This document shows, in pieces, positions 60,584 through 64,000 of a stretch of DNA of 64,000 bases (position 1 is the first letter of the stretch; every line of letters begins with the position of its first letter). The stretch is from positions 124,001 through 188,000 of the IMG/VR virus record IMGVR_UViG_3300037010_001702. One strand, written 5' to 3'. Both the position numbers and the translations under genes were made by a program. Under the pieces are notes generated by a model. It did no database searches. It was not told where the DNA came from and worked only from the letters and a program-made list of their open reading frames with translations.

Positions 60584-61022
60584 AGAAGATAAATTAGGCG
60601 CGGTGTTGGATAGATTACCGGCCTATGAAAAGAAACTTCAAGACGCTGAGCCAATCTTCAAATTAGAAGGCAGACGTCTTGAAGAGATTGCTAGAACACT
60701 TCCACACTATCAGGCCTCTTATGATCAAACTCTTCAAGAGTTGAGAGCTCTTGAAGAGTGGTTGAACAATTTAAAAGAGAAACGTGTTGCTAAATACTGG
60801 AAAAAGTATCTGGAAGGTTATCAGCGCACACTTACCTCTCGCGATATCCAAGCATACATTGCTGGCGAAAAAGAAATTGTTGAGCTCAATCAAATCATCA
60901 TTGAAGTTGCTCTTATGAAGAGTAACGCTTTATCTATTGTAGAGGCTATTAAGAATCTTGGATGGATGGTAGGTCATATAACTAAATTGAGAGTTGCAGA
61001 AATGCAAGATGCTGTACTATGA
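60561..61022 (+). CDS. uvsY: Recombination mediator UvsY
   Basis: KKYLE.Y.R.LTSRDI..YI.GE, GW.VG.I.KLRVA; lies between uvsX and uvsW. Confidence 0.85.
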   Translation: MSFLLLLEEDKLGAVLDRLPAYEKKLQDAEPIFKLEGRRLEEIARTLPHYQASYDQTLQELRALEEWLNNLKEKRVAKYWKKYLEGYQRTLTSRDIQAYIAGEKEIVELNQIIIEVALMKSNALSIVEAIKNLGWMVGHITKLRVAEMQDAVL

Positions 61023-61161
61023 ACACACCAGGATTTACAGGAAAATTTAAAGTTGATGAAGATCTTCTTAGCTAGATTGCTGGTCTAGAAGATAAAGAGT
61101 TGTCAAAGTATTCATACACTTTTGCTGCATAACACAAACTAGAACGGCACTTCTAAATCAC

Positions 61162-62220
61162 ATGAAATGTATTCTGCGAATAACCGATGAAGTATGGTGC
61201 CAGATATCTGGTATAATGCCTGGGCATGTAGAGACATTAGTAAAAGCATTTTCTGTTCACCCAGAAGGTTATTTTTTTATGCCTGCCTTCAAGCTTGGGA
61301 GATGGAACGGATATATCCAATTTTATTCTCCAACAGGTAAGACCTATGTCCGTCTATTAGATCAGGTTATCCCTTACTTAGAGAAGTGGGGATATGACAT
61401 TGAGCTGATAGATAATCGAAAGTACTTTGAACCTCCTGTAGTTGGCGGTAAGCTTTTGACTATTGACCCTGCGGGCATTGCTCTCACTGCTTCTGGGACT
61501 AACATAATGGGCGATGATGTTGTCGTTGGCGGAAAGGTATTCAATCTCCGCCCATACCAATTACAGTGTGTTCAGATTGCTGTAGAGAATGGAAGTGGTT
61601 TCATTATCGCAGGAACTGGTGCAGGCAAAACCTCCATCACAGGTGCTCTCTCCTACTACTATGCCAATGCCGGCTATAAAGTAATCACGATTGTTCCATC
61701 CGGTGATCTTGTAGACCAAACAGCTGAGTGGTATGAACTCCTAGGTCTAGATGTAGGCACCTATTCTGGTACAGAGAAGGACCTTGACCACATGCACATC
61801 GTTGCAACGTGGCAGGCAGTACAGTATAATCCTACAATCATGCATGACTTTCAATGTCTGATTTGGGATGAGTGTTTTTGTGGTGAGACTCCTGTATTGA
61901 TGTCTGACATGACGGAAAAGAAAATAAAAGACGTTCGGGTCGGTGATTATGTTTTATCAATGGACGCAAACGGAAATTTCGAGCCTTGTAAAGTGTTAAA
62001 AACTCACATTAATTTACCAAAATCTAAGGTAAAAATGCTTCGGCTAACGTTTGATAATGGACGTTATTTAGATGTTACCGAAAATCATATTTTCTATCTA
62101 AAAGATGGTAGAAAGGTTATGGCAAAAGATTTAACTGAGCGTGATGATATATGTGAATTCTCCTTAAATAAAATGAAAGCTCATGGAGATAAAGTGAATG
62201 AAGAAGAAAATCATAAATGA
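61162..62220 (+). CDS. uvsW: UvsW helicase N-terminal part plus split IntN (115 aa)
   Basis: LRPYQ, GTGAGKT, ATWQ, IWDE|CFCGETPVLM (IntN starts at 61873), block B VTENHIF. Confidence 0.93.
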   Translation: MKCILRITDEVWCQISGIMPGHVETLVKAFSVHPEGYFFMPAFKLGRWNGYIQFYSPTGKTYVRLLDQVIPYLEKWGYDIELIDNRKYFEPPVVGGKLLTIDPAGIALTASGTNIMGDDVVVGGKVFNLRPYQLQCVQIAVENGSGFIIAGTGAGKTSITGALSYYYANAGYKVITIVPSGDLVDQTAEWYELLGLDVGTYSGTEKDLDHMHIVATWQAVQYNPTIMHDFQCLIWDECFCGETPVLMSDMTEKKIKDVRVGDYVLSMDANGNFEPCKVLKTHINLPKSKVKMLRLTFDNGRYLDVTENHIFYLKDGRKVMAKDLTERDDICEFSLNKMKAHGDKVNEEENHK

Positions 62221-63115
62221 TTTACTAGGAGATGAATTTTTAATAGATATTAAGTTTTTACCTAGAACCGGATCAGTCAGATTGCCTTTTGATTCAGCTG
62301 TATTTTCATGTGGTCGCAAGCTTAATAAAAAAGAGTTTGGTAAATTTTATAGACTATTAATGCAAGGTCATCTTGAAGAAGCTAGGACTTTTGTAGCAGC
62401 TCCACAAGAATTTGAAAAATTAAACAAACAACGAAGGCAGATTGCTGCTTCTAAAGGTGGTAGGGCTGCCATGTTAGATCCGAAAAATTATGTTTGTAAT
62501 AAAAATGGTACGCATTGGAATAGAGGGACAGTTGGATTAGTTAAGGCATGGAACAAAGGATTAACTAAAAATACTGATGTTCGATGCAAAAACATCTCTA
62601 TCGCTAAAATGGGAGCAAAAAACCCAATGTATGGTAGACCAGTATCAGCTTTAACGCGTGAAAAGTTATCATTAAAAGCAAAGCAAAATATTGAATCAGG
62701 TAAATGGACCCCTAATACGTTTAATTCTAGAACAAGAAAGCAACTTAAATTTAGAGATAAACTTTTCAGAAGTAGCTGGGAGGCTCTTTTTTATCAAGCA
62801 TTTCCACAAGCAGAATACGAAAAGATTAGAATACCGTATTTTACTGATAAGCATCACGTTTACATTACCGATTTTAAAGTTGGTAATGTAATTTATGAAA
62901 TAAAACCTGAGAAGTACGTAAAATTAAAACAACCCATTCTTGATATAGTAGCACGCTGGTGTGTTAGCAATGGATTTGAATTTGTTATATTAACTGAATT
63001 TTCTTTAACAGAACTAATACCAAAACACACTGTTAATTTTAGTGAATTTGATGAAAATACTGAAAAACTATTAAGAGGATTATATGCATCTGTTGAAAAA
63101 AGAAGAAATAGATAA
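62198..63115 (+). mobile_element. Free-standing endonuclease (NUMOD-like plus PD-(D/E)XK) between the uvsW halves
   Basis: AWNKGL, KNPMYG, FRSSWE, YE..RIPY, Y.TDF, YEIKP; AT-rich; GGAG RBS. Confidence 0.8.
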
Positions 63116-63941
63116 GCCAGAAAAAGTTTATGATTTAACTGTTGATAAACACCACAACTATATTGTTAATGGTGCTGTTGTTTCGAATTGTCACGGTATC
63201 AAAGCTACTGTTGCGCAGAAACTTGTCAATGATAATGGTAAGCACATTGCATTCCGCTTTGGCGTAACAGGAACATTCCCTAAACCAGAGTCTGAAAAGC
63301 TTTCTCTTATTACTTCAATTGGGCCTATCCTCAAAGAGATTCCTGCTGCGTGGTTAATTGACCATGGTTATCTTGCTAAGGTTCAGATTCAGCCTGTTGA
63401 ATTGAATGAGAGTTATATCGATGAAGACTTTCCTGACTATGCTGCTGAGAAATCCTTCTTAGCTAAGAGCACTAATCGAATGGAGATCATTGCTGATTTG
63501 ATCATCTCTCAATGTGCAGCGCATGGCAATACTCTTGTCCTGGTTAACTCTATTCCATTTGGTGAAAAGTTAGCTAAGCTGATTAAGGGTGCTGTCTTTC
63601 TTTATGGCGAATCACCAAAAGACTTGCGCCGCGAACATTATGATATGTTTGAAGAGAATGATGATATAATAGTAATAGCCTCAGCAGGTATTGCTTCAAC
63701 AGGCCTCTCGATTGACCGTATTTTCTGTATGATGTTTGTAGATGCAGGTAAATCCTTCATCAAAGCTATTCAATCAGTAGGGCGCGGTCTTCGTATTGGA
63801 CATGACAAAGATTCTGTTATGGTTGTCGATGTTCACTCTAAACTAAAATGGGCAGTGAGGCACTTTAAGGAACGAGTGAAGCACTACAAAGAAGCTGGAT
63901 ACCCAATAAACAAGAAACAAACTTTGAAAGTAAAAGGTTAA
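63084..63941 (+). CDS. uvsW: Split IntC (35 aa) plus UvsW helicase C-terminal part
   Basis: VYDLTV..HNYIVNGAVVSN|CHG; RFGVTGT, STGLSI, IQSVGRGLR. Confidence 0.93.
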   Translation: MHLLKKEEIDKPEKVYDLTVDKHHNYIVNGAVVSNCHGIKATVAQKLVNDNGKHIAFRFGVTGTFPKPESEKLSLITSIGPILKEIPAAWLIDHGYLAKVQIQPVELNESYIDEDFPDYAAEKSFLAKSTNRMEIIADLIISQCAAHGNTLVLVNSIPFGEKLAKLIKGAVFLYGESPKDLRREHYDMFEENDDIIVIASAGIASTGLSIDRIFCMMFVDAGKSFIKAIQSVGRGLRIGHDKDSVMVVDVHSKLKWAVRHFKERVKHYKEAGYPINKKQTLKVKG

Positions 63942-64000
63942 ACTATAACTTTGCAGCATCAAATTCTAAATGCACTTTTTAGTGGTGAGTTTTGTTATCT

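Follow-up and report, generated by a model that had tools for sequence, protein, structure and literature searches.

The window analysed here is the whole 64-kb stretch of IMG/VR virus record IMGVR_UViG_3300037010_001702, and all positions below are window coordinates unless they carry an L or P number. In it, the gene for a helicase of the UvsW type lies in two open reading frames (ORFs) with a third between them. ORF1 (61162-62220, + strand, 352 aa) consists of a 237-aa UvsW N-extein followed by a 115-aa N-terminal intein half (IntN), the middle ORF (62198-63115, +, 305 aa) is intact and encodes a putative nuclease, and ORF2 (63084-63941, +, 285 aa) starts with a 35-aa C-terminal intein half (IntC) and continues into a 250-aa UvsW C-extein. 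ORF1 overlaps the nuclease ORF by 23 nt and the nuclease ORF overlaps ORF2 by 32 nt, while the start positions modulo 3 (1, 2, 0) place the three ORFs in three different frames. The N-extein ends with ...LIWDE at 61872, after which IntN opens with CFCGET and contains VTENH. ORF2 reads MHLLKKEEIDKPEKVYDLTVDKHHNYIVNGAVVSN followed by CHG, with IntC ending ...GAVVSN at 63188 and the C-extein beginning at 63189. The insert between the exteins (61873-63188) is 1316 bp long, not a multiple of 3, and its intein halves are separated by 866 bp, with the nuclease gene between them. An earlier note on this DNA, made from the letters alone, had given the same ORF, junction and frame coordinates and an intact endonuclease ORF overlapping both halves in another frame, all of which agree with the ORF list and the sequence.

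The UvsW helicase and its uninterrupted allele

T4 UvsW (1RIF, 2OCA) is the best match in the PDB for both halves of the gene (ORF2 against 2OCA, E = 3.8e-11). Among Pfam profiles, ResIII and DEAD match ORF1 residues 127-238 and Helicase_C matches the rest of ORF2, all above the gathering threshold (GA), with UvsW_N on ORF1 reaching 22.4 bits, under its GA of 25.3. The features of a UvsW-type superfamily 2 helicase are present, including an N-terminal domain, two RecA-like domains, motifs I, II (DExH) and VI, and synteny with gp32 and a UvsX-like RecA. The alignment of ORF1 to T4 UvsW runs up to DEC, and motif II of the T4 protein at the aligned position is NDECHLA. Thus, the intein lies between E and C of the DECH box (DE-CH, a hyphen marking the junction here and below), with the Cys of the motif as the +1 nucleophile.

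The earlier note had pointed to uninterrupted alleles in relatives as a check, and one was found in P0004 (L004:6001-7464), a 487-aa protein from the 90% cluster of ORF2 that is encoded in the same context of gp32, RecA and small ORFs. The joined exteins (711 + 753 nt; 237 + 250 = 487 aa) align to P0004 without gaps at 83% nt and 90% aa identity (86% aa for the N-extein, residues 1-237, and 94% aa for the C-extein, residues 238-487), and the element is exactly absent from this sister allele.

The broken layout recurs in other phages. Four related metagenomic phages (L006, L007, L008, and L010), diverged from the window by dS (synonymous divergence) > 1, have the same three ORFs, the same DE-CH site, and the same +1, +1 frame pattern, with overlaps across the related loci of 14-23 nt (first) and 29-50 nt (second). 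Salmonella phages S16, STP4-a, and SEA1 and Proteus phage PM2, all with finished genomes, likewise have three ORFs at NDE-CH; records of the S16 type label the parts “DNA helicase / hypothetical protein / DNA helicase”, and PHROGs holds separate families, each half being matched end to end. An exhaustive search of 1.84 billion representatives added about 20 further 50%-identity clusters of N-halves that end directly after IntN. Megablast of 61000-64000 against phage records gave no match, so searches at the protein level were needed.

The intein halves

Both intein halves are recognized by profiles. Pfam Hint (PF01079) matches ORF1 residues 237-318 with 43 bits against a GA of 29.7, TIGR01443 (intein_Cterm) matches ORF2 residues 14-36 with 33.3 bits against a cutoff of 15.6, and the PDB matches of ORF1 also include the hedgehog Hint domain and the gp41-1 intein. 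Together they show the hallmarks of a class 1 intein, namely an N-terminal Cys, Thr-x-x-His in block B, a C-terminal Asn followed by a +1 Cys, and a HINT profile match. In the IntN alignment, Cys1 and the block B Thr and His (VTENH) are invariant in 11 split and cis homologues, and all of the split copies and cis forms examined have the terminal Asn and +1 Cys.

At the same DE-CH site, P0016 (residues 222-354), P0142, and P0145 have contiguous mini-inteins of about 133-136 aa. P0043 also has a contiguous mini-intein at this site, and P0022, P0024, and P0026 combine the DE-CH mini-intein with a second insertion in the N-extein. When aligned with the cis mini-inteins of P0016, P0142, and P0145, the break in the window intein maps to the loop that usually holds endonuclease domains. 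The contiguous forms at the same site show that the two halves derive from one HINT domain split at this canonical loop. The best PDB match of the cis form P0016 is the Npu DnaE split intein 4KL5 (E = 8e-8), followed by a bacterial intein-like domain, other DnaE inteins, Spl DnaX, Pho RadA, NrdJ-1, and gp41-1.

The penultimate residue of IntC is Ser rather than His, as the earlier note had pointed out. A penultimate His is common but not universal in inteins and assists Asn cyclization in many of them. All five jumbo-phage copies read VVSN-CH, several cis relatives end SN-CH or AN-CH, the S16 and PM2 copies have a penultimate His, and the Npu DnaE intein ends ASN. With Ser conserved in the clade and Ser or Ala common in cis forms, the residue is, judging from these alignments, a family trait and neither an oddity nor a defect.

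The central proposal of the earlier note, a split intein in the DECH motif of UvsW, is upheld by the profile matches, the uninterrupted allele, and the conservation of the layout in seven independent phage lineages. We conclude with considerable confidence that the window, which comes from an uncultured jumbo myovirus (about 290 kb, T4-like recombination genes), contains a genuine fractured uvsW whose product would be restored by trans-splicing.

The nuclease gene

The middle ORF comprises an N-terminal domain, a NUMOD3 motif (weak match), and a C-terminal PD-(D/E)xK domain. Residues R191, S192, W194, E195, E208, D225, F226, E234, K236, and P237 are invariant in 30 nuclease homologues, and E195, D225, E234, and K236 among them form the E...D...ExK signature of PD-(D/E)xK nucleases. 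AlphaFold models (predicted local distance difference test score, pLDDT, 88 for the whole nuclease and 92 for the nuclease domain) present a helix and then a beta-meander, giving an alpha-beta-beta-beta core in which the catalytic residues are located on helix H193-201 and on or between strands E219-235. Many of the homologues carry a precomputed Pfam tag for PF08722 (TnsA-like_N). Pfam gave no GIY-YIG or Vsr match, the top 50 fold matches include no Vsr or I-Bth0305I structure, and phmmer of the nuclease against the PDB gave no match. The motifs suggest that the middle ORF probably encodes a TnsA-like PD-(D/E)xK nuclease, which is neither GIY-YIG nor Vsr-like/EDxHD.

About ten full-length proteins are related to this nuclease at 47-68% identity, and there are also more distant relatives. 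The four homologues whose context was examined (P0156, P0157, P0160, and P0163) all lie inside a fractured uvsW, and nuclease homologues are found at the same position in L001, L002, L006-L008, and L010. Homologous nuclease domains are also found between the two halves of TerL in HY03-like coliphages. In Escherichia phage HY03 (L011:1645-4497), TerL is encoded by two ORFs of 297 and 461 aa, with a 199-aa endonuclease homologous to the nuclease domain of the window between them; the N-terminal piece of TerL reads IYIDE and then a Cys-initiated tail of about 41 aa, that is, a Walker-B DE-C site with an atypically short IntN.

Proposed mechanism

The anatomy of the locus, the precise junction, the conserved catalytic residues, the conserved architecture and translation signals, and the existing empty and cis-intein alleles are observed. 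Beyond them, we infer splicing, co-transcription, the activity of the nuclease, and its target, according to the following scheme. A composite selfish element lies between the Glu and Cys codons of motif II, namely a class 1 mini-intein together with a free-standing nuclease gene that has invaded its loop. The three overlapping ORFs would probably be co-transcribed, each downstream ORF being translated from its own Shine-Dalgarno sequence (SD) inside the preceding ORF, so that ORF1 would yield N-extein-IntN and ORF2 would yield IntC-C-extein. The halves would then associate and trans-splice via Cys1, the block B Thr and His, the terminal Asn, and the +1 Cys, and the product would be a 487-aa helicase with an intact DECH box. 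During co-infection, the nuclease would presumably cleave uvsW alleles that lack the intein, and the element would spread by homing. Since Ala at +1 cannot support splicing, homing would have to co-convert the +1 codon to Cys.

Translation and transcription signals

Table 1. Features of the fractured uvsW locus in the window
Feature	Position	Strand	Remarks
UvsW N-extein, 237 aa	61162..61872	+	weak UvsW_N match; motif I GAGKT; Walker B through ...IWDE
IntN, 115 aa	61873..62217	+	Cys1 (CFCGET), block B VTENH; TGA stop 62218-62220
GGAG Shine-Dalgarno of nuclease ORF	62185..62188	+	9 nt 5' of ATG 62198; within IntN coding tail
Free-standing homing-endonuclease-like gene, probable NUMOD3 + PD-(D/E)xK (TnsA-like), 305 aa	62198..63115	+	
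AAGAGGA Shine-Dalgarno of ORF2	63073..63079	+	within nuclease gene 3' end
IntC, 35 aa	63084..63188	+	block F VYDLTVDKHHNY; block G IVNGAVVSN; terminal Asn, penultimate Ser
UvsW C-extein, 250 aa + stop	63189..63941	+	begins with +1 Cys of DE-CH; helicase motifs III-VI (Helicase_C)
Whole element, IntN + nuclease gene + IntC	61873..63188	+	1316 bp, 32.2% GC

The features of the locus are listed in Table 1. A 19-aa tail of IntN overlaps the SD and start codon of the nuclease gene. The ATG of the nuclease ORF is invariant in all five loci compared, and its SD is GGAG in three of them, GGGG in L007, and not conserved in L008. The ATG of ORF2 is likewise invariant in five of five related loci, with the SD AAGAGG in four and AAAAGG in L008. 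Programmed frameshifting of the ORFs into one cis-intein polypeptide was considered and rejected, as it would require two +1 shifts, the overlaps hold no recognizable slippery site, and both downstream ORFs have a conserved SD and ATG.

Folding of 62140-62215 gave -7.1 kcal/mol (z = 0.03), and a hairpin sequestering the ribosome-binding site (RBS) upstream of the nuclease start was not found. A promoter and terminator scan of 60900-64000 gave counts not above those of shuffled sequence. The window contains 8 copies of the T4-type late-promoter motif TATAAATA compared to 2.5 expected, and 2 of 100 shuffles had as many as 8. Seven of the copies are on the + strand (11662, 22227, 24235, 44052, 48806, 49663, and 57965) and one is on the - strand (14046), and several are located just 5' of ORF starts. 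An exact copy lies within the IntN coding tail about 30 nt 5' of the nuclease ATG in L008 and L010; at the aligned position (62164-62171), the window matches the motif at six of eight letters.

Distribution and age of the element

At the junction, P0004 reads DEAH, and its +1 codon is GCA versus TGT in the window, differing at all three positions; this Ala versus the +1 Cys is the only amino acid change adjacent to the junction. A total of 19 substitutions between the window and L004 crowd into positions -28 to +51 (about 80 nt), flanked by difference-free stretches of 26 and 23 nt. The coordinates of this patch are 61845-61872 and 63189-63239 in the window and L004:6684-6762 in the sister locus. 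On its C side, the window states are mostly those common to other intein-bearing alleles. The patch possibly represents a co-conversion tract, and conversion of L004 by an empty allele is as possible as conversion in the window lineage.

A tree of the C-exteins places the window as sister to P0004 (support of 100 in the Shimodaira-Hasegawa-like approximate likelihood-ratio test, SH-aLRT) and both within a clade of eight (SH-aLRT 96) made up of five split and three empty alleles, the empty ones reading DEAH or DESH. Since split and empty alleles are mixed in one clade, the distribution of the element is, by this tree, sporadic, as is typical of mobile elements.

At 32.2% GC, the insert is poorer in GC than any other 1316-bp segment of the window, whose mean is 42.7%. 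The inserts of the relatives are of a similar size class. The same contrast between element and exteins is seen in L006 (31% versus 41-42%) and L010 (38.5% versus 44-46%), and it is extreme in L008, whose element has 25.8% GC and whose exteins have 51.6%, the element there being as diverged from other copies as the exteins are. The earlier note had read the AT-rich insert as a sign of recent arrival. The composition itself is as it described, but its use for timing does not hold, because all of the diverged copies share the bias at dS > 1; as the contrast persists through deep divergence, AT bias is a lasting trait of the element and does not date its arrival. Judged by its sequence divergence, the element has a long history in this phage clade and cannot be shown to have arrived recently.

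Alternative explanations

It could still be argued that homing from an AT-rich donor brought the element into this genome only very recently, as the sister allele P0004/L004 is without it, the +1 codon differs throughout (TGT versus GCA), the 19 differences in about 80 nt are compatible with a co-conversion tract, and the insert is the lowest-GC segment of the window. We consider this unlikely, though not to the degree of the two alternatives discussed below. Every diverged copy is equally AT-biased relative to its own exteins, leaving composition uninformative on timing, and the dS of the homing endonuclease gene (about 1.6-2.0) is of the same order as the sole extein estimate (2.5, from the window and L006 C-exteins). 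Comparable dS values would be explained just as well by long residence in the clade, the P0004 lineage having lost or replaced the element, and the junction patch may equally reflect conversion of L004 by an empty allele. A different objection concerns the frames themselves, that is, sequencing or assembly frameshifts could hide a single in-frame cis-intein with a nested endonuclease domain. P0008 and P0011, related loci with IntN and nuclease in one frame, would be in keeping with this, and the read check on the window covered contigs only. However, these contigs are identical in four runs from different studies, and the frame pattern, overlaps, SD, and ATG are conserved in four relatives at dS > 1, as errors would not be. 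S16 and PM2, which are cultured phages with finished genomes, likewise have three ORFs, and even the in-frame forms P0008 and P0011 keep a separate overlapping IntC-C-extein ORF, making a frameshift artifact extremely improbable.

The halves could also be real but unspliced, in which case uvsW would be a dead gene or its two polypeptides would be joined non-covalently through the intein halves, as fractured Aeh1 NrdA is through other domains. Non-spliced assembly of a nuclease-fractured phage gene has been reported (PMC3045599), and a penultimate His is absent here. Yet both exteins retain all helicase motifs and are 86-94% identical in amino acids to the intact sister allele, and neither the split nor the cis homologues vary at Cys1, the block B Thr and His, the terminal Asn, or the +1 Cys. 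Moreover, the break is inside the catalytic DE-CH box, so that the active site of an unspliced complex would be burdened with 150 aa of intein. The Npu DnaE intein, which is a fast natural trans-splicer, likewise ends ASN. Absence of splicing therefore appears improbable to us, less so than a frameshift artifact.

Several points weigh against the preferred reading of a trans-spliced uvsW interrupted by a TnsA-like nuclease gene. TIGR01445 (intein_Nterm) scores 24.1 bits, marginally below its cutoff of 24.5. Pfam TnsA-like_N (PF08722) matches the nuclease at E = 1.5e-5 with 25.9 bits, just below its GA of 26.5. Foldseek of the full-length and domain nuclease models against the PDB found nothing significant; TnsA (1F1Z and 1T0F) is near the top at E of about 0.1-0.2, and TnsA and other PD-(D/E)xK nucleases are found within E of about 0.1-0.9. 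With no significant fold match in the PDB, we base the assignment of a TnsA-like fold on the motifs and the borderline Pfam match. Ratios of nonsynonymous to synonymous substitution rates (dN/dS) below 1 (about 0.1-0.7) were obtained for IntN, IntC, and the nuclease in all computable comparisons, which speaks for the preferred reading, but the values are rough and usable only as “below 1”, as dS is saturated (1 to >3, several pairs not being computable). As T4 can grow without UvsW, the viability of S16 is no proof of splicing. Finally, Logan contigs from four runs of four studies show 0 differences and 0 gaps over the stretch (three in one piece and one in pieces), but they are assembled contigs rather than raw reads, and some runs possibly represent the source sample. 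The read mapping that the earlier note had in mind for both frame breaks is thus answered at the contig level, by identity in four runs.

Comparison with known fractured genes

Fractured genes with split inteins have been described by Dassa et al. (2009) in gp41, IMPDH, DnaE, NrdA, NrdJ, DNA ligase, and terminase (PMC2677866). The window locus resembles these genes (gp41-1, gp41-8, NrdJ-1, IMPDH-1, NrdA-2, and TerL) in its order of N-extein-IntN, free-standing nuclease ORF, and IntC-C-extein, its phage origin, a DNA-metabolism enzyme as host, and a break at the canonical endonuclease-insertion loop. As in them, joining the exteins restores a conserved motif and an uninterrupted homologue exists. 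The 3' end of the nuclease gene and the downstream gene overlap by 6-69 bp in fractured genes (PMC2677866), a range that includes the 32 bp between the window nuclease and ORF2. The window locus differs from the described cases in several respects. The gene uvsW is absent from the eight listed hosts (PMC2677866). Its nuclease is of the putative NUMOD3 plus TnsA-like PD-(D/E)xK type, whereas GIY-YIG and Vsr-like/EDxHD are the two endonuclease kinds described in fractured genes (PMC2677866). An upstream RNA hairpin, often with a late-promoter motif, is present at 15 of 16 fractured-gene loci (PMC2677866), whereas the window has no RBS-sequestering hairpin, and the overlap of ORF1 with the nuclease gene leaves no 5' untranslated region.

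The closest parallels are the fractured uvsW genes of S16, STP4-a, SEA1, and PM2 (Straboviridae), which have the identical site NDE-CH and three overlapping ORFs. Compared to these S16/PM2-type copies, the amino acid identity of the window is 39-44% for IntN, 49-51% for IntC, and 31-33% for the nuclease, and the exteins are only 24-30% identical, because the S16/PM2-type hosts are true T4-like phages of about 160 kb. The S16/PM2-type IntN is shorter (97-98 aa, without the tail), a penultimate His is present, and, unlike in the window, the N and C ORFs are in one frame, with an insert length that is a multiple of 3. The DnaE inteins of Npu and Ssp share with the window the class 1 HINT fold, the same split loop, the +1 Cys, and the ...SN-C end without a penultimate His, but the two DnaE halves are encoded far apart, and no nuclease gene lies between them (PMC2677866).

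The region of uvsW is a documented target of phage homing endonucleases, T4 SegE being located between inh and uvsW (PMC2988022). Unlike the window nuclease, SegE is a GIY-YIG enzyme, is located outside the coding region, and leaves the gene uninterrupted. In S16, an annotated homing endonuclease gene, gp113 (L001:2279-2914), lies directly 5' of the uvsW N-half, at the position of SegE in T4, and with the nuclease inside the gene, the S16 uvsW is both flanked and interrupted by two different mobile nucleases.

In the literature searched, no link of UvsW to a split intein was found, and the publications naming both UvsW and intein, checked in part, made no connection. Nothing relevant was found there for S16 or Gelderlandvirus together with intein, and the S16-type loci are not described there as a split intein. 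UvsW as a less familiar intein host, as the earlier note had put it, holds for the literature but not for sequence records, in which the same allele sits unannotated in the GenBank phages S16, STP4-a, and PM2 and PHROGs has a family for each half.

Variant states and significance

In the two-ORF variants P0008, P0011, P0025, P0060, P0128, and P0111, the N-extein, IntN, and nuclease are in one frame of 537-798 aa, and the two contexts checked, those of P0008 and P0011, have an overlapping IntC-C-extein ORF next. The two-ORF form is possibly an intermediate between the cis-intein and three-ORF forms, and its N fragment would carry the nuclease domain.

Relative to the known fractured genes, the new points are uvsW as the host gene, a nuclease of another family, and a series of intermediate states that exists in nature. 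We tentatively suggest, as a real possibility, that UvsW DE-CH is an undescribed intein allele site present at every stage of fracturing (empty, about 135-aa mini-intein, two-ORF nuclease-IntN fusion, and three-ORF), and that the fracturing agent is an undescribed NUMOD3 + TnsA-like PD-(D/E)xK homing family, which also splits TerL at Walker-B IDE-C in T4-like coliphages. If true, one locus family would provide a natural, testable series for the origin of split inteins. In the Dassa model, split inteins originate when a nuclease gene invades the loop of a mini-intein, and the coexistence of empty, cis, two-ORF, and three-ORF states at one site would permit a test of this model with natural intermediates.

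Protein ligation technology relies heavily on naturally split inteins, of which only a small set is known. The locus family would extend this set to a further host gene and enlarge it by dozens of diverged pairs, with an IntN of about 97-116 aa, an IntC of about 35-36 aa, and the junction ...DE-CH..., that is, if the suggestion is true, a panel of diverged Cys+1 split-intein pairs, many of them probably orthogonal. For annotation, the helicase/hypothetical/helicase triplets in S16-like and jumbo phages would each be predicted to represent one spliced gene plus a mobile nuclease.

Neighboring genes and further inteins

Upstream of the fractured uvsW are genes for gp32-like and RecA/UvsX-like proteins and small ORFs, and a tail-sheath gene is located elsewhere in the window. 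The ORF2 protein is on record from a contig of 290,571 bp, in keeping with a jumbo myovirus, and the virus sequences are found in sediment and microbial-mat metagenomes.

In L007 (L007:408-3014), uvsW is fractured twice, the P-loop being split in addition to the DE-CH split intein. A 189-aa ORF ending in GTGAGK plus a 31-aa Cys-initiated tail is followed by a 362-aa ORF with a weak MTES_1575 match and a Vsr-like ...EFFGDYWH... motif and then by a 334-aa ORF that opens with about 140 aa up to ...VVHHN-TSIT. From its sequence, this P-loop insertion looks like an atypically split intein (very short IntN and long IntC) with a second nuclease of a different type. Contiguous P-loop inteins (GAGK-...HN-T) are found in P0007, P0020, P0022, P0024, P0026, and P0070, the smallest being about 155 aa (P0007) and the largest about 430 aa (P0020), often alongside the DE-CH intein in the same protein. 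The P-loop of the window itself (GAGKTS) is uninterrupted.

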